Of a DNA stretch of 32,000 nucleotides, positions 180-25,758 are shown one piece after another. The position numbers and the translations under genes were made by a program. The notes under the pieces were generated by a model that worked only from the letters and a program-made list of their open reading frames with translations, was not told the origin of the DNA and did not search any database. Numbering within the stretch: position 1 is the first letter of the stretch; each line of letters starts with the position of its first letter. The stretch spans positions 4,416 to 36,415 of the forward strand of contig BAAFSQ010000088.1 of NCBI GenBank assembly GCA_054661495.1. The letters run 5' to 3'. This DNA comes from Zygophlyctis sp. KS116 (lineage: Eukaryota; Fungi; Chytridiomycota).

Positions 180-1637
180 ATGATAAGAGTACTGATTATA
201 CTAGTTTTAGTTATCTGCATTGAATGCTTTATCCAGTAATTTATTCTTAATAATTATAGTATTCCTCTTGAGTTATCCGATCACAGTAAATCATTTAGCA
301 ATTTAAACAGGAAATCACTTATCAAACTCAACTCTAGGAAATCACATCATACATTTGCTCTGATCAGTCAGTTGGGGATCGGAACTCCACCGCAATCATT
401 TAAAGTTATCTTTGACACTGGTAGTTCTGATCTATGGGTGAGATCAGTTGATTGCAAATCTTTAAATTGTTTGGATAAGCCTGCATTCAACTCTTTTGCA
501 TCTTCATCATTTATTAGTCTGGAAGATAGGTCAGGATCTGCTACTTATTATGATGGATTTAATATCAATGGAACTTATGGTAAAGATTCTGTGGATCTAG
601 AAAATAATCTTCTGCTAGAAAATGTTTGTTTTATTGCTGCTTCTGGAATTCCCAATCATACAATTGATATGGATGGAATCGTTGGACTTGATCTTGACTC
701 TATAAACAGGACTAATTCATTTCTAGATATAGCTCGAAACCAAAAGAATGCTTCATCTGTATTTTCTTATTATATAGATTTATCTAATATGTCTGGAGGA
801 ATTACATTTGGAGCAATAGATATTGCGAGATATCACGGAGATTTGAGATGGATTTCTCTATCTCCAACTTTTGATGATTCTCATATTCCTCAATTTAAAG
901 TTTGGAGAGTAAAGTTGGTACAAATATTTATACAAGGAGATTCAATGGATATAAATCCTATATTTACAATATTTGATACAGGATCTTCATTATCATTTGT
1001 ACCTAAAAGTTTAGCAGCATCTATAAATCATAAATTAGGACTTTTTAGGATTGATACTGGACTACCAGGTATACACTATGGTATTCCATGTTTTGATGGT
1101 GAACTACCAGAAATCCCATCAATGATTTTTAGATTTGGTGATGTAGATTTATCAATTTCACCAAATACTATCATGTATTTACAATCCCACGATTCTCAAC
1201 TTTATTGCATGTCTGGACTAGTTGGAAATCATGGTGTTTTATCAAATCAAAATCAATCCAACACAATAATATTGGGAAATGTAATTCTTCGACAATTCTA
1301 TACTGTTTTTGATTATGGAGCAATGAAAATAGGAATATCTGATTCAAACCGACATTCTAACACGTCTTGTAAATTTATTATTGCAGATTCTACAGACTCT
1401 CCGATTGGTCTTTCTCCTCTTTCATTAATTAGAGACACCAATTTTTATGAATCTGTATCTGACACCGGCTACAAGACATTATATATTATTGCCATGACTG
1501 TATTGATCTTGTGCGTAGTATTTATTATTTCTAAAATTTTTATATTCTCAAGGATGGATAATGGATACTCTCTAAATCATACAAATAGTCTTGACACAAG
1601 TTTCAATCTGATAAGCAATGAATCTATGGATCATTAA
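180..1637 (+). CDS. Pepsin-family (A1) aspartic protease 1, signal peptide plus C-terminal TM helix
   Basis: ATG180 MIRVLIILVLVICIECFI signal. A 24-nt intron (236-259) joins in frame to ORF 372. Catalytic FDTGSS twice, DGIVGL, ILGNVILRQFYTVFD. Hydrophobic LYIIAMTVLILCVVFII followed by a polar tail. Confidence 0.92.
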
Positions 1638-1696
1638 AAAGATAGAATGTCCGGATCATGTATAAACGACCGTCGGATCACCTACTCCTGTAATAA

Positions 1697-2894
1697 ATGT
1701 CACTTTTGGTTGATAAATACCGACCGTTAACTCTTGACGCTTTAGATTACCATTCCCAAATCTCAAATTACTTGAGAAATTTAGTATGAGTCAATGTCTA
1801 ATTTTAGGCCGACGGAGGAGATTTGCCGCATTTGTTGGTCGTTGGTCCTTCCGGTGCAGGAAAGAAGACAAGAATTATGGCAACGCTCTCTCAGATATTC
1901 GGACATGGAGTTGAAAAAGTAAATTGTTAAATGACTGATGCAAGTTAAAAATGGAAACAAAAACATTTGTCACTCCATCAAACAAGAAGATTGATTTGAA
2001 TATTGTGTCTTCTAATTATCATTTGGAATTAACTCCAAGGTTTGACATTTTAATCTCATCATAGTGATGTAGGAATGTATGATCGAATTGTTATTCAGGA
2101 ATTAATAAAGGAAATTGCTCAAACTCAGCAAGTAGATTTCAATGCTAAAAAGTCATTTAAAGGTATAATCATTCCAAAGATTAATTCTAGTGGTTGTATT
2201 TAATGAAGCTGATTCATTATCAAAAGATGCACAGGCTGCATTACGTAGAACTATGGAGAAATATATGGGTAATTTGAGAATGATTTTATGTTGTACATCT
2301 TCATCAAAGATTATATCTCCCATTCGTTCAAGATGTTTACTTTTACGTGTTCCTGCTCCTTCAGACTCTGAAATGGCGGCTGTATTGTATAAAGTTGCAG
2401 ATTCTGAAAAATTTGATTTACCTGCAGGATTTGTAACTAGACTTGTAAAAGAGTCAATGGGAAATTTAAGAAAAGCTTTATTAATTTTAGAAGCATCTAG
2501 AGTTGCACAGTAAGACATTTTAAAGAAATTAAATTTTAATAGTTTTCCATTATCTGATGATACACCAATTTTAGCAACAGATTGGGAATCTTTCATTCAA
2601 GAAATTTCATTATCTATTCTTTCTGAACAATCTCCAGCCAGATTATTACAAATACGTGGTCAATTGTATGATTTACTTTCTCATTGTATTCCTGCAGATG
2701 TGATTTTAAAACAATTAACATTTTCACTCTTGAAAACCATGGATCAGCAAATTGTTGGAATGATTTTAGAAGCTTCTGCAGAGTATGATCATCGTCTTCG
2801 ACTAGGAAATAAGGATATTTTCCATTTAGAAGCTTTTGTTGCAAAGGTTATGTCAATTTATAAGCGTTTCTTAATGGAACTGGGTATGGCCTAG
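1697..2894 (+). CDS. RFC5: Replication factor C subunit (yeast Rfc5 / human RFC3 orthologue)
   Basis: Spliced model [75 protein letters not shown]. Introns 1784-1807, 1919-1944, 2040-2064, 2163-2190, 2510-2542. Confidence 0.95.
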
Positions 2895-2915
2895 GCCGAA
2901 AGTGAAGAATTTGAA

Positions 2916-4350
2916 ATGAGAATCTTGTTTTTACTTTTTGTTTTTGATCCATTGGTCAGAGGAGACTCTCCAATCTTTCAGTAATTATTTCTATTTAAAG
3001 GCTAGTCTCCCATTGCATAATAATCATTTGAAAGCGATGAGACCAATCAAAAGATCCGATTCACATCATCCGCTAAAGAGACAAACATTTGATCCATTAG
3101 TAGCCAAGGACTCTAAAAGTCTCTTTGTTTTCACTGGAACTCTTGATATCGGAACTCCAAAGCAAACGCTGGGAGTACTCTTTGACACTGGAAGTTACAA
3201 TTTGTGGGTCAGATCTATTGAATGTCGATCTCTGGAATGCTCAGGATTGCCAACATATAATCCATCAGCTTCGTCAACATTTGTAAACACTACAAAACCA
3301 GCTACAAGCATTAAATATGTTGATGGGACAACTGTACAGGGATATTTGGCATTTGAAAGTATTTCTTTGGGAACTATAAATAATCCAAAACAACAGTTTG
3401 AGGCTGCAACTGAAACTAATGATGATTCATCAGCGTATGATGGAATTTTGGGGTAATTTTATTTAAATTTTTTCTAATATTTAGTCTTGCTTTTCGTAAT
3501 ATTTTTACTTTTTTTTAATATTTTAGCTCCTACAACTAGTGATTTTACATTTTGGGATACAGCTATTAGATCAAAGGCTTCAAGTTCATATTGTTTTTCT
3601 TATTATATTGATTCTACAAATACTGCCGGAGGGATGACATTTGGTGGGATAGATACTGCTAGGTATAATGGAAATCTAAATTGGATTCCAATTGTGCCTA
3701 CTGCTACTTCATTCGGACAGCCTGTGTTTGTGTATTGGCAGATTAAATTGAATAGTTTGGATGTAGGCGGAATATCTATCCCATTTAATCCTACTGAAGC
3801 AGTAGTGGATACAGGCACTTCTTTAGCAATTTTCCCAATAGAGACTGCCCAAAAAATCAATAATAATTTAGGGCTTCAACAAATAGGTGCTGGATCTAAT
3901 GGTTTACAAATGTATGGTGTAAGATGCTCGAATGGAGAGATTCCTAAAAATCTTCCTGATGTGGTATTTAACTTTGACTATATCACAGTTTCTATCCCTG
4001 CATCCACGTATCTGTTTGTTCATCCAGATGATAGTGGTAGATTGGTTTGTATTTCAGGATTTGTTGGATCATCTCTTTCTTCAACAGCAGCTCCTATCCT
4101 CGGTAATGTGATATTACGACAATTTTATATGGTTTTTGATTATTCTGCCCGAAAGATTGGAATAGCAAATGCTGACCGATCTCCTTACTTGAATTCATCA
4201 TTTGTGGCTGCAGATTTCAGAAATTCTCCTGTTGGAACTGCTCCTGCTTCATTAAATGGAGGAATTAAATATAATGGGCGTAGTGGGGCATCTAAAGCAT
4301 CACATATAAACGTTTTTGTATTCATGGGTTTACTCTCAATGATGTTATAA
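2916..4350 (+). CDS. Pepsin-family aspartic protease 2, probably GPI-anchored
   Basis: ATG2916 signal MRILFLLFVF. Introns 2981-3005, 3453-3484, 3496-3526. FDTGSY and VDTGTS motifs; DGILGLAF is rebuilt via an 11-nt micro-exon. C-terminal S/G/A spacer plus hydrophobic tail. Confidence 0.92.
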
Positions 4351-4441
4351 TGTCTAAAATGGGATTTCAGTGTCTAAAATTCTATTAATACTCTCATGTG
4401 CGCGATGTCTAATTTTAGACCACTTAGTTTTAAATAAAAAC

Positions 4442-5851
4442 ATGCAGCTAATCTGCTGCTTAATTCTCATGTTTGTTCTACTTGCCGAGGAAGGATCTTT
4501 GGTAAACTGTGAGACCCAATCAAGTTTTAAGTAAGTGTACTTTCTTAAAATTAGTATCCCACTTGCCAATCAATTAATGTCTGATCATCAGTCAGACCTT
4601 TCAGGTTTGAGATTTGAGAGCACACATTTTCATTTTAATAAGCGGCAAGTGACTCGAAGCATCACTGGAAATACTCCCAGGAGCTTGTTTACTGTAAGAA
4701 TTATCAATGTATTAATTCTGTAGTATGTAGGAGTTTTGTCATTTGGAACTCCTGCTATTGATCAAACATTTTTATTTGATTCAGGAAGTACTAAAACATG
4801 GATAAAAAGTTCAAAATGCAAATGTGGAGGGAATTTCAGTACTAATGCGTCATCTTCATTAATTCTTTATACTCAATCAGCATCGGTATCATACCTTGAC
4901 GGGACAAGAGTTAGCGGTCAATTTGCTTCGGACATCGTATCTATAAACAATCTTACAGCTGAAAAGTTTACATTTTTTTTGGCTGAATCAATAGTAAATC
5001 CTTCTCAGCCAGATCCGGCAAGTAACTATGATGGGATATCTGGATTTGGATTTTCTTCGGACAATCCTTCATTATTTCAAAAGATCTTTCAAAATTATCC
5101 GTCGTTATCTCCAGTAATTTCATACTTTATCGATCGTTCTGAAACAAATGGCGGAATAACTATTGGCGGTATAGATATATCCAGGTTCAGTGGACCTCTA
5201 GCAGTTGAAAGTATTATCCCAGCGAGTAAAGAAAATTCTGAAACCTTTTCTTTAAAGCTGGATTCGATCTATGTTGACAAAAGCAGCATATCTCTTGATT
5301 CGGCCTCGACTAAAAGCGTACTTATTGACACCGGAACATCATTAACTTTGCTTCCGGATTCTGTTGCCAAGTTGGTTCATCAAAAATTAAACTTTCTTCC
5401 TCTGGGAAACGATTTCCCAGGATTTTATGGAATATATTGTCCCGAGCGCACTGTTCCATCACGATTACCCGTAGTTACAATCACAATGGGGAAAGTTAAA
5501 TTAAGGTTTACTCCTGATATATATACTTTCATAATAACCGACACTTTAAAAAACAATTCGTACTGTGTTTCTGGATTCCAAGCCCATTCTTCAGACCAAT
5601 TTATTATTGGTAATGTTTTATTAAGACGGTACTACACTGTTTTCGATATTGTTAACAAGCGAATTGGATTTGCAACATGTAACAGAAATCCAAACGTTAA
5701 ATCGACAATTGTTTCGCTAGATTTGACCAAATCAGTAAAGGGAATTGCAGATCCCAGCTCTGTTTTTGGCGAAACTTCAAGTGAATCCTTTGCACAAGAA
5801 ATTTATTTAAACCGATTTATAATAATTGGCCTTCTGCCATTGCTTTTTTAA
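4442..5851 (+). CDS. Pepsin-family aspartic protease 3, probably GPI-anchored
   Basis: ATG4442 MQLICCLILMFVLLA. Introns 4531-4554 and 4694-4723. KR at the end of the propeptide. FDSGST and IDTGTS motifs, IIGNVLLRRYYTVFD, hydrophobic C-terminus. Confidence 0.92.
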
Positions 5852-6012
5852 TAAAAATATAGAATGGATTTTCAATTTTACGATTTGAGAAATTTACAGC
5901 ATATTTACAAGAGTATGTCGGACAAACTCCTTTCAAGTAGTGGGACTATTGTCGGGATCATTACAAATCACAATTATCGTGGCGAGTGGCACCGATCGGT
6001 TCTTAAAATAAA

Positions 6013-6978
6013 ATGAATATTGCAGCAGAAACAAAACAGCTGCTACAGCAATACTATGGGCTCTCTGAAGGACTTCCGGAGCAAAGAATAAAGTCCAAAT
6101 GGATGCCGGAAAACAACTTTGGCTTCTTGCTCGGCATCATTGCCTATGGAGATGATACCCACATCACTCAACTTCACAGCTTGCTGCAAAACAATCAGTT
6201 CAAAGATCAGGAACAGTATTTTATTGGCTTTATGTTTGACTGGTACATTAGGCCTTTTCACAAGAGCTACAATAATTCAGAATCCTGTCGCACGCCCTCA
6301 ATAGTGTCTTTAACGACATCATCAACTGAAGAAAATGAGCTGGCTCATAAGGATCTGAAAACAGCTGTGAAAAAGAGGGATGATGTCTGTTTGTTTTGTT
6401 GGGACATATTGTCATTGGAAGGTGCTCATATTATTGCACAAAAGAACATTGCAATCCAGTATGATGAATCGTCAATTTTACATCGAGCTGGTCTTATTCA
6501 GAAACACCAAGTGCAGAATGGTTTGCTCTTGTGTATTAAGTGTCACAGTCAGTTTGACAAATTGAAGCGATATGTCGATGTCGTTGATGGCAAGCTGGTG
6601 GTAAGGATAGTTAACGAATCAAATGATTTGGGCAGTTATAAGCACAAAATGTGGTATCAAAGTTCCAGAAGATTAAAAGGAGAACGAGATTTCAGTGAAA
6701 AATATTGGATTCTTATTGACAACCGCAAAGCCGTTGAATCCAATAAGGAAATGGCCCTGTATTTCGTTGAAAATGATCAAACTATTCTGCCAAACAGAAA
6801 TGCATTAGAATTTCACAAGACGGCTTGTCTTATTTGGAGAATGGCAGGTGGTTCTGAACCGGACGAGGAATACTGTTCTGATGATTATTATGATGATGAT
6901 GATGATGAACAAGGTCCTGTAGATACGGCTGCTTTGAGGAAACGTTTCAAACTAGCACAAGATTATTATCAACTCTGA
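6013..6978 (+). CDS. HNH endonuclease-domain protein (HNH_2-like, Crinkler-effector-type nuclease domain), intronless
   Basis: 321-aa ORF with KRDDVCLFC..AHII..NGLLLCIKCHSQFD: two CxxC pairs plus the H-N-H residues. Acidic C-terminal tract. Confidence 0.8.
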   Translation: MNIAAETKQLLQQYYGLSEGLPEQRIKSKWMPENNFGFLLGIIAYGDDTHITQLHSLLQNNQFKDQEQYFIGFMFDWYIRPFHKSYNNSESCRTPSIVSLTTSSTEENELAHKDLKTAVKKRDDVCLFCWDILSLEGAHIIAQKNIAIQYDESSILHRAGLIQKHQVQNGLLLCIKCHSQFDKLKRYVDVVDGKLVVRIVNESNDLGSYKHKMWYQSSRRLKGERDFSEKYWILIDNRKAVESNKEMALYFVENDQTILPNRNALEFHKTACLIWRMAGGSEPDEEYCSDDYYDDDDDEQGPVDTAALRKRFKLAQDYYQL

Positions 6979-7090
6979 GTCCTGACATTGAAAAATCCAC
7001 AGGTCTAAATCAGGCTACTAATTTGATTTCAATTAATAATAAATGCCTTTGTTTTTAACCTTAATAGCAGAAATTTAATGATTTTAGCTT

Positions 7091-7121
7091 GTGCCGTTGA
7101 TGCCGTTTCATGAAACGCCGT
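7091..7121. promoter_or_regulatory. Candidate cis-element upstream of protease 4 (TGCCGTT repeats and palindrome CGTTTCATGAAACG)
   Basis: GC-rich repeat in an AT-rich intergenic region, immediately upstream of TATAAA. A near-identical inverted copy lies at 10191-10230. Confidence 0.5.
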
Positions 7122-7147
7122 GTCTATAAATAATTATTCTATAAATA

Positions 7148-8498
7148 ATGAATGCAATTATAACAGCCCTGATTGCATTCAATCTATTGATGATGCATTC
7201 ATCAGCCGAGGTAGAGATGTAATCTAATGCAATTATTAATATTTAGGATATCACTCTCAAATCCTGTGATGAGCAGAACTAAACTGCTAGTGGAGTTGTT
7301 ATTGAATAATACTTTTCAAAAAAGGCAGGCCCCAACTCTGATACAAGATAATGATCGTAATATCATATTTAGCTTTAGAGGGGAGGCAACTGTGGGAACT
7401 CCTGCTCAGTCTTTCAATGTATTGTTTGATACTGGAAGCTTTCAATTTTGGATTCAGTCCGGAAGTTGCATGAATTGTAGCGGAAATTTATTCGATCCTA
7501 GCAAGTCTTCAACATTTGTAGATCAAAATAGGCCTGCAAGACCAATCAGATATGTTGATGGAACAATGGTAAATAGTCAATTCATTTCGGAGACTGTTTC
7601 TGTTAACAATCGCTCCAAGCAAAATCTGATCATGAATTTGGCTACGAGCATGAATGGAGATAATAACATTGATGGAATAATGGGATTTGGTTTCAGCGCC
7701 AGGGCAGAATATCCCACTTTTATTTCTGAAATTTTCAAATCTGATCCATCACTCTCCCCAATATTTTCATATTTTATAGATAACAGTGATATATCAGGAG
7801 GTTTGATGATTGGTGGGATTGATAAGTCAAGATTTAGCGGTCCATTAGCGACTGAAACTATTCTACCTTTGGAAAAATCACCATATTGGGAACTTTCGAT
7901 GAACTCATTGCTGATAGGAGGGACCGAATTAGACATTCCACAAAATATGACTGCAATCTTTGATACCGGAAGCTCTCTTGCAGTCTATAGTAACTCAATG
8001 TCAGATAGCATCAATCAGAAGTTAGGACTTTCTCAAATACCAAAATATCCTACTGGATGGTATGGATTGCAATGTAAAAATGGTCAAATTCCTGCAGGAT
8101 TACCAGACTTGGTAATGACTTTTGGGGGTGTCAAATTAAAGTTTACTCCAAAGGAATATATTTACTTGACAGGGAATCAAAATGATATTTATTGTGTTTC
8201 TGGGATAATCGGAATTTCGAAACTACGTTCTGATCAGTCCATAATTGGTAATGTCCTACTCAGAAGATATTATACAGTTTTTGATACCAAAAATCGAAAA
8301 CTGGGATTTGCAACATGCAATCGACAGCCACTAACGGAATCAAAAGTCGCACAGTTCGATCTCTCTACAGAGATTGTTGGTATCGCTGATCCCAGTACAG
8401 TAAATGGTGAAACAAACAGCAGGAGCAACAATGCAAATGGTCAGTATAATTCACTCGTTATTCATCTATTATATGTTTTAGTAGTAAAATTTATTTAG
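7148..8498 (+). CDS. Pepsin-family aspartic protease 4, probably GPI-anchored
   Basis: ATG7148 MNAIITALIAFNLLMMHSSA signal. Intron 7219-7246. QKR site, FDTGSF and FDTGSS motifs, DGIMGFGF, hydrophobic tail. Confidence 0.92.
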
Positions 8499-8609
8499 AT
8501 GAAACGAGAATTTTTACAATGAGTTGGAGTAATACATGTTTCAAATCGAATCCTCGGTCCATGAAACGAGAAAATTTTCCTGGTCTTTTCAAACTCAAGG
8601 AATTTAAGA

Positions 8610-10094
8610 ATGATCGTCCTTATTTCATTTCTATTGTATTGCCCCATGCTATTGGATGCGTTGGAGTCAGACATTGGCGGATCATCCAACAAGATCTTTA
8701 GGTAATTTTTACCTTTAACCGTAGTATAAAATTAGAAAATCCAAAGTTACAGCGACATCTTGAGAGAATCGCTAGTTTGGTCAAGAAGATTCCAATAATG
8801 CCTCATAAGAAATTTCTTCCTGTGCATAAGCTTCAGGAAAAGCCCATAAAAATGTCAACAATCGGTAATATCGCCAAGAATGTACTCAAGCATTTGCATA
8901 AGAGAGTTATGGACAATCGTCTGATTGGAAATGACGAATTACATTTATTTACTGTAAGTCTCAAGGAATTTTCTAAAAATATAGTATCATGGGCTGATTC
9001 AGTTGGGGAATCCGGCTCAACAATTCAAAATTTTGTTTGATACAGGAAGTACAAGATTATGGATTAGAGGACCCGGACAATGCACCAGTCAAACTTGTCG
9101 TACATTCAATCCAGCAAATTCGAGAACCTTTTCTAATCTAAATGCGACTGCTCCGAGAATTCAATATGGTGACGGATCTTTTGTGGAAGGAAACTGGGTC
9201 AGTGACAGGGTCCAAGTAGCAGACACATGGGTGAACAGTTTCAAGTTTCAAATAGGAACAAATGTTTATGATACAGCTGATGAAGACGGGATTATGGGTC
9301 TGGGATTTTCTCAAATGCGGCTAGAGCCCACGTATTGGGAGACTTTGGTTAATAACAAGTTGGTAACTTCACCTGTTTTTTCTGTTTTTATCGATTCAAC
9401 CGAAACATCAGGGGCCATAACATTCGGAGGTGTGGATTTGGCAAGATATTCAGGGCCTTTAATATGGATTCCTGCAGTAGGAAGTATGAAAGGATCATTT
9501 TACTGGGGTTTGGAACTCAATAGCTTTTTTGTGGGCTCTACTTCTATTCCTTTAGAGGAATCAGAAAAACATCCCATAATTGATACTGGAACTTCACTTG
9601 GAATATTTCCCTCAGCGCTAGCAAAGAAAATTAATAATCAATTGGGCTTACAAAGAGTTAATATTGGAGGGACTGCTGATGATTATAGAGGATTCCCTTG
9701 CCCATCAGGCAAAGTTCCATTGGTCACTAATCTTCCAAATTTGATACTATCTTTTGGTACTGCACAACTAACATTTACTCCTCAAGAATATTTGTTTATC
9801 CAAACGGACAATACTGATCAGCCGGTCTGTATTTCTGGTATTGTTCCCGGATCTTCGAATATTTTCATATTAGGGAATGTTTTAATCCGTAGATACTATA
9901 TAGTATTTGATCAAAGCTCTCGCCAAATTGGGTTTGCCGTAGCAAATAGAACGCCAAGAGTTAATTCGCAATTTGTGGCAGCCAGTGCTACAAACTCACC
10001 GATTGGTCGGTCTCCTCCTGCCTCTATTCCTATGGTTGGATTAAAACCGCCTGTTCCCTTTGGGACTCCTGTTCCAATAGCAATACCTGGTTGA
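8610..10094 (+). CDS. Pepsin-family aspartic protease 5, secreted, Pro-rich tail
   Basis: ATG8610 MIVLISFLLYCPMLLDA. Introns 8702-8724 and 8954-8984. Basic propeptide ending HKR. FDTGST and IDTGTS motifs, YGDGS flap. Confidence 0.92.
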
Positions 10095-10190
10095 TATTCT
10101 TTGGAAGATAATCAAATAAAATTTAATTTCATGATATTTTTAGCAAACTCAGTTGCTGAAGGAAAGGTTATTTGGGTGGCGTCCGGAAAG

Positions 10191-10230
10191 GTGCCGTGTG
10201 AAACGGCATCTGCAACGGCATCTGCTGCCG
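10191..10230. promoter_or_regulatory. Candidate cis-element upstream of protease 6 (AACGGCATCTGC tandem repeat)
   Basis: TGAAACGGCATCTGCAACGGCATCTGC; its reverse complement matches the element at 7091. Confidence 0.5.
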
Positions 10231-10246
10231 CAAATACCTACCAAAA

Positions 10247-11778
10247 ATGAGAGGAGCTGCAGTTTTTCTCTTTCTTTTTTTCATTCTTACAGTTAAATCA
10301 GATGTATTTCAGTAAGACAATATTATGTATTAACTCATTACAGAATCAAAACCACCAATCCGGTCATGATAAGATTGGGTGAATATATCAAAGCATTCAA
10401 ATTCAGAAAACTTTCACAACTCAGGGACTCTAAAAGTCCATTAAAACAAGCACAATTTGAGAGACCGCCAGCAATCAGACAACCAATTTCAGATCTACCG
10501 GACAAACACAAATTTCCTCCAGGAAAACCATTTCCAAATGTCAATCCTGTCGCACCCAATGCTGTTCCTCACCAAGTTCCAGAAATTCCAAAAGTTTCTC
10601 GATTCGGCTCTATAGGCAGCAAGGTTGCAAATGTTTTAAAGAAAATTGCTTTTAGAAAGCGACAGATACAGGAACAACAATTCAAAGGCAATGATGCTAA
10701 CCATCTGTTTTCGGTAATATTCTAATTATCCTTAATTTTTCAGTATCTTGGTGAATTTAGTGTCGGAACTCCTGGGAAATCATTGCGTTTGCTAATGGAC
10801 ACAGGAAGCAGTAGAATGTGGGTCAGGGGTCAAGGACAGTGCAATGCAGACTCTGATAAATGTCAAGTGTTTGATCCCGAGTCATCACAAACTGTTCGTC
10901 ATCTTAATGAGGCTGCACCTCGAATTACTTATGGGGATGGTTCTTTTGTCGAAGGACAATGGATAACGGATAAAGTCAGTATAGGCTCATTTACTTCTGA
11001 AAATTTCAAATTTCAACTTGGAACAACTGTTCAGGATCTTGCAGATGAAGATGGAATTCTTGGTCTTGGGTTTTCTGTGACTATGGGGGTACCTACTCTT
11101 TGGGAGAGCTTGATCATGCAGACAATACCCGATTCACCAGTCTTTTCAACTTATATAGATGAGACAGAAACGACCGGTTCATTCATTGTTGGCGGGACTG
11201 ATTTGGCAAGGTATAAGGGTGACATTACATGGAGCAGTGTTTCCAACAACTCTGGAGTATATTGGGCGATTGACTTGAAAGGAATTAATGTTGGTGAAAC
11301 AAGGATAAATAGCGCATCAAACTCAAATTTGAAGACGGTTATTGATACGGGAACTTCTCTAGCAATTTTCCCACAAAATGTAGCAGATGAAATCAGAAAT
11401 ACACTGAATCTACCAAGTTTAGATCTTGGTTCGACTCCAGATACATATGTTGGAATCTCTTGTCCTGATGGACATGTTCCGTCAAACCTCAATCTTCCAT
11501 CGATTAAATTGTCAGTAGATAATCAAGATCTTTTATTTTCACCAAATGAATACCTTTTCGTTTATCCCGACAATGCAGGAAACCTACAATGCGTTTTGGG
11601 AGTTATCGGTTCAGATATGGATCATATTATATTGGGAAATCTATTCCTTAGGAAATATTATTTAGTATTTGATCAATGGTTCAGAAAGATTGGCTTTGCG
11701 GCTCCAAACCGTGCGGTAAATGTTGAAAATAATTTTGTTCCTTCAAACTACCATATCTGGTGGCCAGGCCAAGGCTAA
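10247..11778 (+). CDS. Pepsin-family aspartic protease 6, secreted, long Pro/Lys-rich propeptide
   Basis: ATG10247 MRGAAVFLFLFFILTVKS. Introns 10312-10343 and 10714-10743. RKR site, MDTGSS and IDTGTS motifs, DGILGLGF. Confidence 0.92.
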
Positions 11779-18236: not shown

Positions 18237-19878
18237 ATGTCATTCACTCAAGACTGTTTAAAAGAATCATTTGAGGCAGAATATGTAGCACTAGCAACAT
18301 CATTGTCTCCTGGCGTAGCTCTAGCAGCTTTAATAAACTCTAACAATTCACCAGCAATCAATAAATACATAAAGGAAATTTCAGTAGCAGATATTCCAAT
18401 GCCTATATCTAAAGATGAGCAGAAAAATATTGACAGGATGATGAATGACTTATCTGTAAGATCAAATACTGAAAAGTCTCAAATGTCCGAACGAAAATAT
18501 ACAGACAAGAGGATGAAAGAAAAGTCTAAAGATGTCACTATTAAGGTTAAAGAAGAGGATCCTGATATAGCTGCAGAAAAAAGGGAGAAGGAAATGCATG
18601 ATAATGTAAATTGGTTGATTTATCATAGAGGGCAATAGCAATTTATGATCTTTTTGAAAGAAAAAGAGTAGCTTATCATGATCAGGGAAGAATAGAAATC
18701 AAGAAACATTTAATACAATCGAAACAAAGGCTGGAGAAATTGGAAAAGAATTTGAAATTGGCTGGTGAAAAAAAGCCCAAAGTAGAGGCAAAGGTATGTA
18801 ATTTTACAAAATAAATAAAAGAAAAAAGTAGAATTACCACTACATCTGCAGGGCGGACTGAACAATAACTTTAAAGTGGATGAATCAATGAAATCTTGTT
18901 GGTATGATCGAGTCGCAGAAAACTATTTATCAAAACGTAGATTACCCAAAAAGGAAAAATTAAAGAATAACTATATAAATCAAGTACCCATTCAACATGA
19001 TCAAATCGTTTCTCGACCTACTTTATCAAAAAAGGAAGAGATTGGTAATGTCCAAAAGGGTCTGTTAGATAATATATTTGGTGCTCCTGTAATGTGCTCA
19101 TTAAATACACAAATAGAAATGAATGATGATACTTCGTACTATTTTACAAAATATGATTATGATTTTCATTCGGTATGATGAATTCATTTATATTTAGGAG
19201 AAATTGAAAAGAAAAAACAAGCTAAAGCAGATTTCCGATCAGATTTCTAGAAATAAAGCTGTGACTTTGGACTCCTTAGTGCACAATGGAATAAATGTGA
19301 TAGCTCCGCCTGTCTCAGAAAAAGTAGAAGAGGAAACTATACTCATTAACATTCCAGACGATGACACATTAGAGGAAACAACAGATGATAAATCACTTCA
19401 AAGGCGACAATCTTTGCTCAGAACTAAAAAGTCATTCAGTGAAAAGGAAGAGAGACTAACTACTAGAAGATCATTCTTATTAAGCAGAAATAATTCAAGA
19501 AGAACTAATGAATCGGATTCAGATGCACGTATCAGTGTTGGAGAGGATGATATAATCAATATATTTTTTCCTCAGTCTCCAAGTAGTCAGAGTAACAACT
19601 TAAGTGTCATTTTTAAAGGAAAATCGCCAAGGAAAATTGATGAGAAGGATGCAATTAAATTGCCTGATTTTGCAATCAGTGAAAATACAGGATCAGAATT
19701 GCATACCAATATTTCTAAAGCAGCAGATAATCAAGTAACAAAAGTGGTCGAAAAGTCAAAAGTTAAAAAAGTACCAGAACCGCTTACATGGAATGAAATG
19801 GTTGAAATGGACAGTCAGAAAATAGTGGCACCTGAAAAAGTTCCCCTAATGAAATGGTATAATCCAAAATTCAATTAA
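18237..19878 (+). CDS. Hypothetical hydrophilic, Lys/Glu/Ser-rich protein
   Basis: Four exons joined in frame by introns 18606-18628, 18794-18821, 19173-19197. No recognised domain. Confidence 0.65.
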
Positions 19879-20966
19879 AGTTTTATCCAAATTGTATCAC
19901 CATTTTCAATTTCTAGACTTTGCAAGGATTCAGTAAAATCAAAAGCCTCAAATTTTTGCTTATGTTTCCCATCCTCTGTCTCATACGGAACCAATCTTCC
20001 TAACTTAAATGGTTGAACATTTCCCAGCGCAGCATCAAAAGCTGGCTTTGATTCTGACTGTCCGATTTGTAATTGTTTAATCGCAAAAAAATCTTGAGAA
20101 ATTTGTCTTTTCAACATATCTACAGACATATCCAGGGTGGGAACCATGATAGTAGCCCCATCAGACTTTTTAAGTTTACCACCTTCTTTATCTGCGTTTG
20201 AAGAATGTATTCTCAAGTGAATAAATATAACCTCCTATTTTTTAGATTTCCAAAATACCTCTTTATCAATAGGATCAACGGATGCCCGATTAATATAGTA
20301 TTTACTTTTAAGAGTCGGATCTAATGCTTGCCTTAAAATTGCATTTGTTTCTAGTTCTAGAGTATTGCTTGTTTTTTCGGACACCGAGCCAAATGTTTCG
20401 TAAATTTCATCCATATTTTGAAGCACTAATTTTTTAATTTCAATTATTTACATAATTCTTCCATATCTGCATGATGAGTTGCCAATTCCGAGTACCTCTT
20501 TGATTGTGATAAAACAGTATCATCCAACTGTCCGATATTTGCGTTTGCCAGACCTTTAACTGATTCAATCTGAGCTTGATGAATTCTATTATTTGAAAAC
20601 ATCAACTGTGCTTGTGAACCAATCATTACAGATCGTGAAAAGTTCTTATCACTTACCGATCTATACAATGCAATTTGTTGAGCAATCATTTTAGCCTTTG
20701 GTAAATCTAATATTCAATAAGAGTATAATACCTCCTTTACTAGCAAAGCTTTTAAGTTGAATCATCTAAATAATTAATGTTCAAACTTTTACTAAAGATT
20801 TTTCAGATCGATCTAAATTCGTACGATCTCTCTTCAAGTCTCGTTGACACGCTGTAGCATTCCTTTTAACATACTTTAATCGATCTGCTCGATCGTTTAG
20901 AGTTTTACTTTTGGCAGGAGTATTTTTAGTTAATTGCCAAGATGTCCAATCCATCATTGACTGCAT
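19875..20966 (-). CDS. ESCRT-III (Snf7 family, CHMP2/Vps2-Vps24 class) domain fused to a C-terminal ubiquitin-like domain
   Basis: QRDLKRDRTNLDRSEKSLMIQLKSFASKGDLPKAKMIAQQIALYR matches CHMP2 helices 1-2. C-terminal LDMSVDMLKRQI...SLQSLEIENGDTIWIKL. Introns 20766-20792, 20707-20731, 20426-20451, 20235-20258. Confidence 0.75.
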
Positions 20967-21049: not shown

Positions 21050-23437
21050 ATGTTTAAACGACCAAGGCCTCTTCAAAATCTACCAGATGCAAAAGACTTG
21101 TTAGTTGATGACTTTGGTAGAAGAGTAACATATTCTGATTTTACGACGATTGACTGGATTCATGATAATACAAAAGAACGAGTAAGACAGAGAGCATTGG
21201 CAAAGATAACTGGAATACGTGGAATTCTATTAAGAGTATGGGATGCTTCAATAGCATGGATTGCGGTTTTGTTGATTGGTATGCAGTCTATTTAATGCGC
21301 TAGGAGCAATTACAGGATTAATAGCGGGATATATTGATATATCCGCTGAATGGTTGTCCGATATTAAGGAAGGATACTGTTCTGATGGATTTTATTTGAA
21401 ATATAAGTTTTGCTGTCAGTACAGGGAAGATAATTGTCCTGAATGGGTTTCATGGGATCAAAGTTGGATAGTAGGATATTTTTTATATACAGGTTTGGCT
21501 GTTATTTTTGGGCTTTTAAGTGCAGTCTTTGTTTATCAATACGCTCCTTATGCAGCTGGATCTGGAATTCCAGAAGTGATTAAACTTTGAAATAAATTGT
21601 AGGTAAAGACTATTCTTGGTGGATTTGTGATTCGAAACTTTTTAAGTCTTTCAACTCTATTGATCAAAGTAGTCAGCTTGATTCTTTCTGTTGCGTCTGG
21701 TATGGCTTTGGGAAAAGAAGGTCCGCTAGTACACGTTGCGTGTTGTATTGGACAGATTATACCGTCTTTCTTTAGAAAATACTCAAATAATGAAGCTAAA
21801 AAGAGGGAAATGTTGAGTGTAGCATCTGCAACAGGTGTAAGTGTAGCTTTTGGGGCGCCAATTGGAGGAGTAAACAGTATTCTTTAATTTTCCAGGTTTT
21901 GTTTTCACTAGAAGAAGTCTCATACTATTTTCCTTATAAGACAATGTGGAGGTCATTTATTGCAGCTATGATAGGAGCTCTTTCACTTCAGTTGGTTAAT
22001 CCTTTTCGTAGTGGGAAATTGGTGCTGTTTCAGGTCTCATATCATCGTAATTGGAATACGTTTGAGCTTCCCTTTTTTGTATTCATTGGAGTTATGGGAG
22101 GCATTTATGGGACATTTTTTATCAACATGGTATCTTAAAATTGTCATAACCCCAAGAATTTGAAATATGCACGATTCAAGAAAAATTCATGGGTTAAGAA
22201 CTGGCCCATTGCAGAGGTTGCAGGCGTTGCATTTTTGACCGGAATGCTTAGTTATCCGTTTCATTTTTCGAGGTAAATGCCTTAACTCATTTTTCATTAG
22301 ATCAAATGCCTCTGAACTAGTTGCAAATCTTTTTCGCGAATGTGCTGAGGTTGAGAGGGATTTTTATGGTCTATGTAATCCAAATCAATTCTGGGTCAGT
22401 ATCATCTCATTAATAATTACGATTATAATCAAAATATTTCTAACTATAATCACGTTTGGGATCAAAGTGCCAGCTGGAATATTGTATTCTCCTGATAAAT
22501 AATAATACTTAGTATCCCATCCATGGCTATCGGAGCATCATTTGGTCGAATCGTCGGGATGATTATAGAAGCCTGGCAGCAAAAGTATCCTACATTATGG
22601 CTCTTTGCATCGTGTCAAGACAGTAGATGTGTCACCCCTGGAACCTACGCTATGGTTGGAGCTGCAGCCTCGCTTGCAGGAATCACTAGGATGGCTGTTT
22701 CTCTTACTGTGATAATGTTTGAATTGACAGGGGCATTTTCTTATGTTTTGCCGATTATGTTGACGGTTATGGTGGCTAATTGGGTCGGCAACGCTTTAGA
22801 AAAAAGAGGGTATTTTTGAATCAAAGTAACAAAAAAGAATATATGATGGGCTTATTCAACTAAATGACTATCCTTACTTGGATTTGAAAGAGAAATATCT
22901 TGAAGATAACACAGCAGGCGACCTTATGACGAGGGCGGAGGATATTCAACTAATTCCAGCCACTGGTCACACTATTGAGAGTCTAGGTACTTGTTAGTCT
23001 CTAATTTTATAGAGATTATGCTCTCTGAAAGTGAGTATCAGGGATTTCCAATTGTCTCATCACTGCAAGAAATGTATCTCGTTGGTTATGCTGGAAAAGC
23101 CGAACTATTATACGCTATCAAAGGAGCTAAGGACACTTTAATGTCCGCGAATAGCATTTGTTTATTTTCTGAAGATTCACATGTTTCAGATACGGATGTT
23201 ACTCTGGATCTAAGACCTTGGATGGACTCAACTCCATTTACTTTACATCCAAGGTATCCCATGGGATTGGTTTTAGAAGTTTTTAAAAAATTGGGACTAA
23301 GAAGCGTACTAATAACGCGCAGAGGGAAGTTATGCGGACTGATCACGAAAAAAGATTTGCTCCATCATCTCAACTGTCTAAATGATCCCACGGGAAGATA
23401 TAGTCCAGTCGGTGTATGGGATAGAGAAACTGGTTAA
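21050..23437 (+). CDS. CLC chloride/proton antiporter (CLC-3/Gef1 type) with CBS domains
   Basis: FTTIDW, GSGIPE, GKEGP (gating Glu), GVLFSLEE (proton Glu), PAGIFIP, C-terminal CBS pair. Eight introns of 25-29 nt (21279, 21576, 21870, 22130, 22273, 22484, 22810, 22987). Confidence 0.95.
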
Positions 23438-23540: not shown

Positions 23541-25758
23541 TTATCTTCTCTTTTTATGTCGACTTTTGCTCTTGTTCTTTGACTTGAATTTCGGGCTAGA
23601 TTTCTTATCTTTAACAGAGGAGTTTCCTACTGAAGGCTTTTTCCGGTTATCAACTTCTCGGTCGAATGAGCCTTGTTTGGTAGTTGACTTTTTCTTTGGG
23701 GTCTCTTTTGCACTTGATTCAGATATTTTTAATATTTTTTTTGGTTTCAAACTTATTTTCGAAGATCTCGCGGCTGCCTTTTGAGATACCATTTCTTTAG
23801 AATCTTCCTCGACTGCTAGTCTGCGTCTTTTTTGCTTACGACTAAGGCCATCTAATTTTCCTCGTTTCAGTTGTTTAGTTTGTGAGTTATTAGAATTTTC
23901 TACCATACCAAAATCAAGCTTATGTTTGGCTGAACCAAGAGCTAAAAGATTATAATAAATATTTTTTACCTTTTGATTCAGCCTTACCAGATTCACTCTG
24001 GAACCATATTCTTGCAGGGCGGCTTTTTATCTCATTTTCATGAATAATCAGATTTTCAGCTTTGCTGGCTTCCATATCAGCTATTCTGAATTCTTTTTGC
24101 TCCTTTTCTTCAGAAAACACTTCTTTGATCTTGCCCTCCAAACTTTTAATTTTACCCTGGAACTTTTCAATTACCGACGATGGCATGACTCTACTTTTAA
24201 TCTGATCCTTTGAATTCTTAATTGCAAGTTTTAAAACATTTCTATCATCTTCCCCGACAAAACTAACGGCTCTTCCTGACTTTGAAGCACGAGCAGTTCG
24301 TCCAACTCTGTGAACATATTGCGAGTAGTTACGGGGCATTTCATAATTAATGACAGTTTTGATTCCAGAAATATCCAATCCACGAGAAGCCAAATCTGTA
24401 GCTAGCAAGAAATCTACTTTTTTCTCTCTAAACAGTTCTAATGACTCCAAACGCTGCACCTGAGTTAGATTTCCATGCAGCTCTGCCGATTTCAAACCCA
24501 AAAGTTTAAAAACAATATTCATGTAATGTGCAGCAGATTTTGATTTAAAAAAGATGATTGCTTCGCTAGTGTAAGTACGTGAGCAGAGAGCAACTAGTAG
24601 TGCTGCACGACTATCTTCTCTGTGCGCACGGACTCTTATAAACTCTTGCAGTAGTCTCTTTGCCATTGATGATTGATTATCAACAAATAGACGAACAGGT
24701 CGATTAAGAGATAATTTAATAAGGTCATCGACATTATCTGTCATAGTAGCAGAAAAGAGCATAGTTTGCCTAGATTTTGGCGTATGCTTTATAATTTCAT
24801 TCAATTCATCTGCAAATCCATCTTCCAACATTCTATCAGCTTCATCCATAATTAAAATTTCAATACTATCAAGATTAAAGCTCTGAGAATTGTGAATATG
24901 ATCAATCAATCTTCCAGGAGTTGCAATAATGACGTCTGGCCTTTTCTTCAATTCTAGTTCCTGGGTTTTTGAAGAAAGACCACCGACAGTTAGACAAAAT
25001 TCAATATCTGTATATTTTGCCAAATTCTTTGCCACATTAGCAACCTGTACTCCCAATTCTCTAGTAGGAACCAGAATCAAAACTCTAGATTTTGCAACAT
25101 CCTTTGCCCTAAAAAGTAATCTTTCCAAAACCGGGATAACAAAAGCAGCAGTTTTTCCAGACCCAGTGACCGCCCCACCACAAATATCTTTTCCCATCAT
25201 AGCAATAGGAATAGTCTTTGCTTGAATTGGAGTTGGTTTAACAAATCCAAGATCTGAAATACCTTTTAAAATTGATCTTGACAATCTTAAAACAGTAAAA
25301 CTATCAATCAAATCATCACCTTGATCATAAGCAGGCATTTCAAAAAACTCTTGTTTTCTTTTTTCATTGACTATATCCACTGGATCCTGTTCTTGAATAA
25401 TTTCTCTTTTTGAATCTTGCTGGTCTGATTGGATCGAATCTTGCTCATCTTCATCTTGATCATCACTTTCTTGATCATCTTCATCTTGACAATCACCTGC
25501 ATCACCTGCATCATTTTCCGATGCATCGCTTTCATCATCTTGACCAATGTCCGATGCATCACTAATTTCACTCTTTGCAGATTCCTTTTCTAGGGTTATT
25601 TGAGCACTGATCTCATTCTCCTTTTGTAGACCTTGAAAATCATCAAATTCAAAATCTTGATCCTATATTTAGCGAATGCTAATTACCATGATTGGGTCAG
25701 TCTCTGTGTCTGATAATGATGATGCATTGGAGAGTGCTTCCAGATCGATTTCGAGCAT
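23541..25758 (-). CDS. DRS1: DEAD-box RNA helicase Drs1/DDX27
   Basis: GKDICGGAVTGSGKT, PTRELG, DEAD, SAT, HRVGRTAR, EIKSRPARIWFQ. Acidic N-terminus and basic C-terminus. Introns 25663-25686 and 23942-23969. Confidence 0.93.

Follow-up and report, generated by a model that had tools for sequence, protein, structure and literature searches.

To our knowledge, all ESCRT-III subunits that have been studied well depend for the link to their regulators on short C-terminal MIMs, which bind the MIT domains of Vps4 and of other proteins. Ubiquitin is read upstream of ESCRT-III, by ESCRT-0, -I and -II. An additional globular module on the Snf7 core is found in one ESCRT-III member, CHMP7. Outside this family, UBX domains illustrate how C-terminal, non-conjugatable beta-grasp domains can bind Cdc48. 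The stretch of DNA analysed here (the window; 32,000 nt of contig BAAFSQ010000088.1 from the chytrid Zygophlyctis sp. KS116) carries a gene that very probably encodes an intact, divergent subunit of the Vps2/CHMP2 type in which the MIM tail is swapped for a ubiquitin-like domain (UBL), a combination found among named organisms only in Chytridiomycota and Blastocladiomycota. With a conserved subunit devoid of MIM1 and ending in a ubiquitin fold, the polymer of ESCRT-III would itself bear a ubiquitin-like signal, and the family is a natural case in which to ask whether the regulation of ESCRT-III filaments can do without the MIM-MIT code.

The predicted protein shares with Vps2/CHMP2A (PF03357) a homologous alpha1-alpha5 core, as well as a basic N-terminal half and an acidic distal half. 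However, the family lacks MIM1, has about 120 residues of UBL at the place where the tail would be and is so diverged that most members miss the Pfam cut-off. Like CHMP7, it joins a Snf7 core to a fused globular module, but the module of CHMP7 is N-terminal and of the winged-helix type (ESCRT-II-like), whereas that of the window gene is C-terminal and predicted to be a beta-grasp. The integral UBLs of Dsk2/Rad23, Rad60 (SLD2), tubulin cofactor E and RING1B (RAWUL) resemble the window UBL in their beta-grasp fold and in being non-conjugatable parts of larger proteins. However, they have no detectable sequence relation to it (no Pfam match and no PDB sequence match), and the window UBL differs from them by two extra short helices, a beta1-beta2 insert and a signature of its own.

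Gene structure and splicing

The first-pass annotation had joined the open reading frames of this locus through four introns of 24-27 nt into one protein of about 330 aa, and both the coordinates and the model hold. The gene has five exons, which add up to 990 nt (329 codons plus the stop), and four introns:

19875..20966, minus strand: whole coding region, from the ATG (20966-20964) to the TAA stop (19877-19875); 329 codons once spliced
20793..20966, minus strand: exon 1, 58 codons; N-terminal end plus the greater part of ESCRT-III alpha1
20766..20792, minus strand: intron 1, 27 nt, GTA..TAG; contains a TGA in frame
20732..20765, minus strand: exon 2, 34 nt; last part of alpha1, then the turn (..ASKG-D)
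20707..20731, minus strand: intron 2, 25 nt, GTA..TAG
20452..20706, minus strand: exon 3, 255 nt; alpha2-alpha3 and start of alpha4, aligning to the family
20426..20451, minus strand: intron 3, 26 nt, GTA..TAG
20259..20425, minus strand: exon 4, 167 nt; last part of alpha4, acidic linker, alpha5-equivalent (..ILRQALDP..) and linker to the UBL
20235..20258, minus strand: intron 4, 24 nt, GTA..TAG, its final TAG in frame; its removal links the UBL to the ESCRT-III half
19878..20234 (from 19875 with the stop), minus strand: exon 5, 119 codons; predicted UBL beta-grasp, no di-Gly

Exon 1 is basic (14 K+R vs 7 D+E) and exon 4 acidic (10 D+E vs 6 K+R).

Tiny introns are usual in this genome, the introns of its own Snf7 gene measuring 24, 27 and 30 nt, and all four large exons of the window gene are collinear with uninterrupted chytrid proteins of 317-402 aa. 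The gene was also compared with a metagenome relative at 88% identity (L010) and with a more distant relative (L009). Intron 1 measures 23 nt in L010, vs 27 nt in the window, and about 73 nt in L009, where it occupies the same codon position. Intron 2 is precisely missing from L010 (25 nt fewer, with the frame kept) and likewise from L009, so that exon 2 runs directly into exon 3 in both. Introns 3 and 4 are 22 and 28 nt long in L010, vs 26 and 24 nt in the window, and neither difference is a multiple of three; every exon indel between the two genes is. A total of 115 codons differ from L010 only synonymously and 51 non-synonymously. The ATG is kept, and the sequence upstream of it has diverged and contains a large indel. 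In L009 (protein P0002), intron 4 is absent and the ESCRT-III half and the UBL lie in a single open frame. These comparisons with relatives place the five-exon model far beyond chance and indicate that the gene is intact, spliced and under purifying selection.

The same data bear on the possibility that the locus holds two separate genes, i.e. an ESCRT-III-like protein cut short by the TAG at 20237-20235 and an independent small UBL protein downstream, the 24-nt spacer being intergenic. The upstream frame does stop at this in-frame TAG under the standard code, and prokaryote-style callers gave the UBL alone on metagenome contigs (P0001, 93 aa). However, the UBL frame has no ATG ahead of its first beta-strand, and both halves share one frame in L009 and in all named orthologues. 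Moreover, the spacer differs by 4 nt in L010, where splicing it out is the only way to keep the flanks in frame, and its GTATTTTGG..TAG form is that of the tiny introns proven in the genome's own Snf7 gene. We thus consider two genes extremely improbable. A ciliate-type code, in which TAA and TAG are sense codons, had been prompted by the tiny introns and was rejected, given that long standard-code ORFs are abundant and that in L010 the frame would be lost if intron 4 were retained. Genomes with tiny introns conceal multi-exon genes from ORF-based callers, and the present gene is an example.

The ESCRT-III-like half

A resemblance of the N-terminal half to CHMP2/Vps2 had been proposed by eye, and profile comparisons bear it out. 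When a family profile that included the window exons was compared with PDB sequences, CHMP2A was the top match (E 3.1e-10), followed by CHMP3 (0.005) and CHMP1B (0.6); profile positions 23-157 aligned with CHMP2A 6-143. Among the genome's own paralogues, Vps2 matched best by hhalign (96% probability, E 2e-9, 145 columns), vs E 0.005 for Vps24 and 0.1 for Did2, and the alpha5 block aligned with 'DEILQKVLDE' of this Vps2. Exon 1 is 44% identical to residues 12-43 of the same protein (BLASTP, E 5e-6), and the exon 3 region is aligned by the family profile to both CHMP2A and the own Vps2.

As to Snf7 profiles, the relationship appears at the level of the family and not exon by exon; searches were made with individual exons of the window or with naturally occurring full-length orthologues. 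Two orthologues exceed the Pfam Snf7 cut-off of 27.3 bits (P0022 with 37.1 bits and P0009 with 29.2 bits), and six others fall below it. The window exons scanned singly against Pfam gave no Snf7 match at E up to 10, a six-frame Snf7 profile search of the genome did not flag the locus, and a PDB sequence search with exon 3 alone gave no match. An AlphaFold2 (AF2) model of the orthologue P0007 (pLDDT 84.3) has helices at residues 21-66, 69-123, 129-168 and 172-191, forming a long hairpin and two further helices, and its best Foldseek match is CHMP2A (7zcg_B, E 4e-3). Feature- and shape-based searches of the ESM Atlas returned only weak leads, to Snf7 and to UBLs, and no cluster of the same architecture. 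Altogether, the alignments indicate a divergent ESCRT-III subunit of the Vps2/CHMP2 type that retains the alpha1-alpha5 helical core.

The predicted ubiquitin-like domain

The C-terminal region had been suggested, from the spacing of its strands and helix, to be a beta-grasp domain with no di-Gly, and modelling agrees with this. Exon 5 yielded an AF2 model with a pLDDT of 83.5 and a pTM of 0.73, which superimposes on ubiquitin with a VIA-align Z score of 9.5 and an rmsd of 1.9 A over 72 residues. Of the 50 best VIA-align matches, nearly all are ubiquitin or UBLs, and the top Foldseek matches are all UBLs (E about 1e-3); the structural neighbours comprise ubiquitin, Dsk2, Rad60-SLD, TBCE and RAWUL. 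At the sequence level, exon 5 matched no Pfam family (PF00240, PF11976, UBX and others) at E up to 10 and no PDB sequence when searched alone, and language-model leads to UBL clusters were weak (0.84-0.87). It has 26 sequence relatives; a search restricted to the UBL part of P0008 gave 18 candidates and, besides the query, P0039 alone.

None of 25 family members ends in GG, and the window protein ends in ..WIKL. The model, taken with these termini, indicates that the last exon encodes a non-conjugatable ubiquitin-like beta-grasp fold. The two short helices that distinguish it follow helix 1 and precede strand 3; the beta1-beta2 loop holds a variable, low-complexity, disordered insert. The family signature reads TLD-S-DMLKR ... 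PF-LG ... SLK--G. Conservation peaks at the end of beta2 and in the first helix (TLD-S-DMLKR) and shows no obvious patch of the Ile44 type, which suggests that this UBL may be read by something other than classical ubiquitin-binding domains.

Paralogues in the genome and the missing MIM1

The genome contains seven canonical Snf7-family loci (Vps2, Vps24, Did2, Snf7, Vps20, Vps60 and the CHMP7-like L005), as well as a Vps4 gene. Whether a canonical Vps2 exists elsewhere in the genome was a question raised by the first-pass annotation; one is present on another contig (L001, at G000:C138), scores 142.5 bits to Snf7 and has MIM1. The UBL-bearing gene is therefore an extra paralogue, the eighth Snf7-family member of the genome rather than the Vps2 orthologue. 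In a small tree with long branches, built from the family N-termini and five of the genome's own paralogues, the family groups by itself, separate from these paralogues (support 83/93), and no canonical paralogue was singled out as its sister.

The MIM1 pattern (D/E)xxLxxRLxxL(K/R) was found in none of the window exons and in none of the 25 family members. As positive controls, the genome's own Vps2, Vps24 and Did2 all match it. The Vps4-recruiting MIM tail is thus replaced by the predicted ubiquitin-like domain.

Distribution of the family

A search of zoosporic fungi for the same architecture, as had been advised, was productive. At least about 30 full-length orthologues are present among the matches listed by searches capped at 8000 candidates, and all those from named organisms belong to Chytridiomycota or Blastocladiomycota; the matches listed include none from Dikarya and none from Spizellomyces. 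The architecture is real and conserved, and it is not unique to this genome. The public databases label every orthologue 'hypothetical protein', and we found no paper describing any family member. The earlier view that the architecture is undescribed therefore stands as regards the literature, but the protein is not one of a kind. For annotation, the finding allows about 30 'hypothetical proteins' to be given a name. In chytrids, genetic transformation has been published for Spizellomyces punctatus (PMC7213984).

Proposed function

By analogy with Vps2, which does so with Vps24, the core would join ESCRT-III polymers on membranes. Canonical engagement of the Vps4 MIT domain would not be possible because MIM1 is absent. 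The UBL may instead equip the polymer with a ubiquitin-fold surface on which another partner docks, candidates being a deubiquitinase, a segregase or a component of ESCRT that binds ubiquitin or UBLs. We hold this docking role tentatively, at somewhat short of even chances. That the matches listed from named organisms all come from zoospore-forming lineages suggests that the step concerned could be a membrane-remodelling event of the zoosporic life cycle, such as the cleavage of the sporangium into zoospores or the handling of flagellar membranes; this is a guess, and the phyletic pattern is its sole basis.

The position of the UBL, exactly where ESCRT-III subunits have their regulatory tail, would also suit a domain acting intramolecularly, as a regulatory cap that supports or replaces autoinhibition by alpha5 and the MIM, or that ends filaments by blocking the recruitment of Vps4. 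The strong conservation of the alpha5-equivalent right before the UBL is in line with such a cap, and the conserved basic face of UBL helix 1 (MLKR) could pair with the acidic alpha4-alpha5 region. However, there is no sign of docking between core and UBL, and the linker before the UBL, like the beta1-beta2 loop, is long, variable and of low complexity across the family, as expected of a freely tethered module; we regard a cap as unlikely. A complex prediction with the core (18-200) and the UBL (208-317) of P0007 scored 0.00, a value that counts neither way. The absence of MIM1 and the beta-grasp fold would also be accommodated if the UBL were a UBX-like handle for Cdc48/p97 and the polymers were disassembled by Cdc48 rather than by Vps4, for which UBX domains give a precedent by analogy. 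Yet exon 5 lacks a Pfam match to UBX or ubiquitin even at E up to 10, and none of the listed structural neighbours is titled a UBX domain, so that this handle seems very unlikely.

A further reading places the protein outside ESCRT altogether, as a derived coiled-coil scaffold in a zoospore-specific non-membrane structure, e.g. a flagellar or cytoskeletal one. The high divergence of the core, with most members under the Snf7 cut-off, a phyletic pattern that tracks the zoosporic grade and the UBLs of tubulin cofactor E among the structural neighbours are all compatible with it. However, the similarity to CHMP2A/Vps2 spans the whole alpha1-alpha5 core, the basic/acidic polarity is kept and structural matches between UBLs are generic, which makes a scaffold of this kind distinctly unlikely.

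An ESCRT-III subunit with a docking UBL can be taken one step further, to a dedicated zoosporic subunit whose polymers would be read or recycled via the ubiquitin fold instead of MIM-MIT-Vps4, in a zoospore-specific event that may be sporangium cleavage or may involve flagellar or contractile-vacuole membranes, and which terrestrial fungi would have lost along with the flagellum. In this full form the proposal is unlikely; if true, it would add a second way to couple ESCRT-III with downstream machinery. Since the family is found only in zoospore-forming fungi among named organisms, with no match listed from Dikarya, it is a candidate marker for cell biology lost on the transition to terrestrial fungi.

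Gene model and genome setting

The window belongs to a 12.7 Mb genome in 1175 contigs (C88:4416-36415), which uses the standard code, since long ORFs are intact under it. The gene studied here encodes an ESCRT-III-like half followed by a C-terminal ubiquitin-like domain (UBL). We recovered the same coordinates and exon/intron borders as the four-intron model of the first-pass annotation:

20966 (ATG) to 19877-19875 (TAA), minus strand, whole gene; exons total 990 nt, or 329 codons plus stop
20966-20793, minus strand, exon 1, 174 nt
20792-20766, minus strand, intron 1, 27 nt
20765-20732, minus strand, exon 2, 34 nt
20731-20707, minus strand, intron 2, 25 nt
20706-20452, minus strand, exon 3, 255 nt
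20451-20426, minus strand, intron 3, 26 nt
20425-20259, minus strand, exon 4, 167 nt
20258-20235, minus strand, intron 4, 24 nt
20234-19875, minus strand, exon 5, 360 nt including the stop

All four introns have the form GTA...TAG, and introns of 24-27 nt are routine in this genome. The canonical Snf7 gene has GTA..AG introns of 24, 27 and 30 nt, like those of the ESCRT-III-UBL gene. Its first intron (contig C86; 24 nt) is a multiple of three without an in-frame stop and, if retained, would add 8 residues with the frame unbroken.

Evidence that the exons are joined

A look-up of RNA runs listed none, and the support for splicing comes from comparison with relatives. An exhaustive search with exon 5 returned 26 relatives. 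Some of these are uninterrupted proteins of 317-402 aa that carry the matching domain at the C-terminus, and exons 1, 3, 4 and 5 of the window are collinear with them in alignment. Two DNA loci of relatives are of particular use. The Logan contig L009 (protein P0002, 64% identity over exon 5) has one intron exactly at the position of intron 1, downstream of which the ESCRT-III-like half and the C-terminal domain lie in a single open frame. In the metagenome contig L010 (88% identity over exon 5), introns 1, 3 and 4 measure 23, 22 and 28 nt, each differing by 4 nt from its window counterpart, and intron 2 is absent to the base with the frame kept, meaning that a tiny intron was recently gained or lost. 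All exon indels between the window and L010 are multiples of three; codons with synonymous-only differences number 115 against 51 with non-synonymous ones (47 against 16 in the C-terminal exon alone). Both halves of the gene show purifying selection.

In the window, no ATG lies upstream of the first strand in the frame of the C-terminal domain, and a divergently transcribed CLC chloride-channel gene adjoins the ESCRT-III-UBL gene in the window, L009 and L010 alike. Because of this collinearity, the open frame of L009, the introns, indels and codons of L010, the missing ATG and the synteny, we regard the five-exon gene, including the junction 20259|20234 that fuses the two halves, as established short of cDNA.

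The N-terminal half is related to Vps2/CHMP2

Throughout the analysis, the queries were individual window exons or naturally occurring full-length orthologues. Taken singly, none of the window exons reaches the Pfam Snf7 model (PF03357), and when the genome was scanned in six frames with this model, seven other loci were found and not this one. Two orthologues pass its cut-off of 27.3 bits (P0022, 37.1; P0009, 29.2), and six more give sub-threshold matches. A family profile of 29 rows, window exons included, was searched against all PDB sequences and matched CHMP2A (E 3.1e-10; profile 23-157 against CHMP2A 6-143), followed by CHMP3 (E 0.005) and CHMP1B (E 0.6). With hhalign, the same profile matched the genome's own Vps2 at 96% probability (E 2e-9, 145 columns, from alpha1 through the alpha5 block), own Vps24 at E 0.005 and own Did2 at E 0.1; exon 1 alone is 44% identical to residues 12-43 of own Vps2 (E 5e-6). 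For the full-length orthologue P0007, AF2 gives a model (pLDDT 84.3) with helices at 21-66, 69-123, 129-168 and 172-191, which Foldseek matches best to CHMP2A of the CHMP2A-CHMP3 polymer. Charge is distributed as in ESCRT-III subunits, with a basic exon 1 and an acidic exon 4. The ESCRT-III homology is clear at the family level, and profile scores favour a Vps2/CHMP2 origin. The resemblance to CHMP2/Vps2 proposed from the sequence by eye is borne out by the profile, hhalign and exon 1, but not by single exons against the Snf7 model.

The C-terminal exon adopts a ubiquitin-like fold

An AF2 model of the window's exon 5, built on a 38-sequence alignment (pLDDT 83.5, pTM 0.73), consists of two strands, three helices and three strands, with a disordered insert in the first hairpin loop. 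Its top 50 Foldseek matches in the PDB are ubiquitin-like domains (E about 1e-3), including Rad60 SLD2, the tubulin cofactor E UBL, RING1B RAWUL, Dsk2, ISG15 and Hub1. In a second, independent all-against-all alignment nearly all of the top 50 are ubiquitin or UBLs, the best with Z 9.5 and rmsd 1.9 Å over 72 residues, the whole length of ubiquitin. The beta-grasp suspected from strand spacing is found by both structural comparisons. Compared with Pfam families and PDB sequences, the exon belongs to no named UBL family; it has its own signature, conserved most strongly from the last part of strand 2 through helix 1. A C-terminal di-Gly is absent from the window protein, as initially noted, and from each of 25 relatives.

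A divergent paralogue beside a canonical set

The genome also encodes Vps4 and the following ESCRT-III genes, among them the canonical Vps2 that was to be sought elsewhere:

L001, canonical Vps2
L002, canonical Snf7
L003, canonical Vps24
L004, canonical Vps20
L005, CHMP7-like gene
L006/L008, canonical Vps60
L007, canonical Did2

The MIM1 pattern, the tail motif through which canonical subunits recruit Vps4, is found in own Vps2, Vps24 and Did2 and is absent from the window exons and from 25 of 25 family members checked. Because the canonical set lies elsewhere and MIM1 is absent from the family, the ESCRT-III-UBL gene is an eighth, divergent ESCRT-III gene, with the UBL in place of the MIM tail. 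As for the phylogeny proposed at first pass, a small tree with the own paralogues keeps the family together (83/93) but does not fix its position among these long branches.

Distribution

Orthologues from named organisms were found in Chytridiomycota (Zopfochytrium, Siphonaria, Obelidium, Rhizoclosmatium, Podochytrium, Blyttiomyces, Entophlyctis, Rhizophlyctis, Physocladia, Chytriomyces, Synchytrium, Phlyctochytrium, Irineochytrium, Chytridium, Cladochytrium, Gorgonomyces and Chytridiales sp.) and Blastocladiomycota (Catenaria, Paraphysoderma). Every named orthologue is labelled 'hypothetical protein', and the remaining matches are metagenome or Logan contigs. Dikarya and other non-flagellated fungi are absent from the matches listed in profile searches, which covered up to 8000 candidates each, and from those of a single-sequence search run exhaustively over 1.84 billion representatives. 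We take the architecture as shown to be real and conserved across a fungal grade. The first-pass annotation knew of no precedent; we likewise found no published description of an ESCRT-III protein with a C-terminal UBL, but the architecture is not unique to this genome.

Possible function of the fusion

The core would join ESCRT-III polymers, with Vps24 and Snf7 as its probable partners, and the protein could not recruit Vps4 via MIM1. Our tentative preference, at somewhat under even chances, is that the UBL presents a surface on which another factor docks. That it serves instead as an intramolecular regulatory cap seems unlikely; an action outside the ESCRT pathway altogether is less probable again, and we give slightly less credence still to the UBL as a handle for Cdc48.

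Neighbouring genes

Other features of the window are:

372-11778, plus strand, tandem eukaryotic aspartyl protease genes (PF00026, six ORFs, E 1e-35 to 1e-62)
6013-6978, plus strand, 321-aa ORF starting with ATG and encoding an HNH_2 endonuclease domain (PF13391, E 9e-7), within the protease array
19204-19878, plus strand, 224-aa ORF without Pfam match, forming the 3'-terminal part of the convergent neighbour
21050-23437, plus strand, CLC chloride channel gene (Voltage_CLC and CBS domains) with many short exons and tiny introns
23950-25380, minus strand, intact 476-aa DEAD-box helicase ORF (DEAD 2e-49, Helicase_C 8e-30), without intron in this stretch

The start codons of the divergent CLC and ESCRT-III-UBL genes are only about 85 nt apart, and the two genes are also neighbours in L009 and L010. 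On the other side, the stop codons of the convergent ORF and the ESCRT-III-UBL gene overlap by 2 nt at 19875-19878. Genes are packed extremely tightly here, and the 3' UTRs must extend into the adjacent gene. A gap of 2 nt separates this convergent pair in L010, where the neighbour is called as 486 aa with no Pfam family on record.
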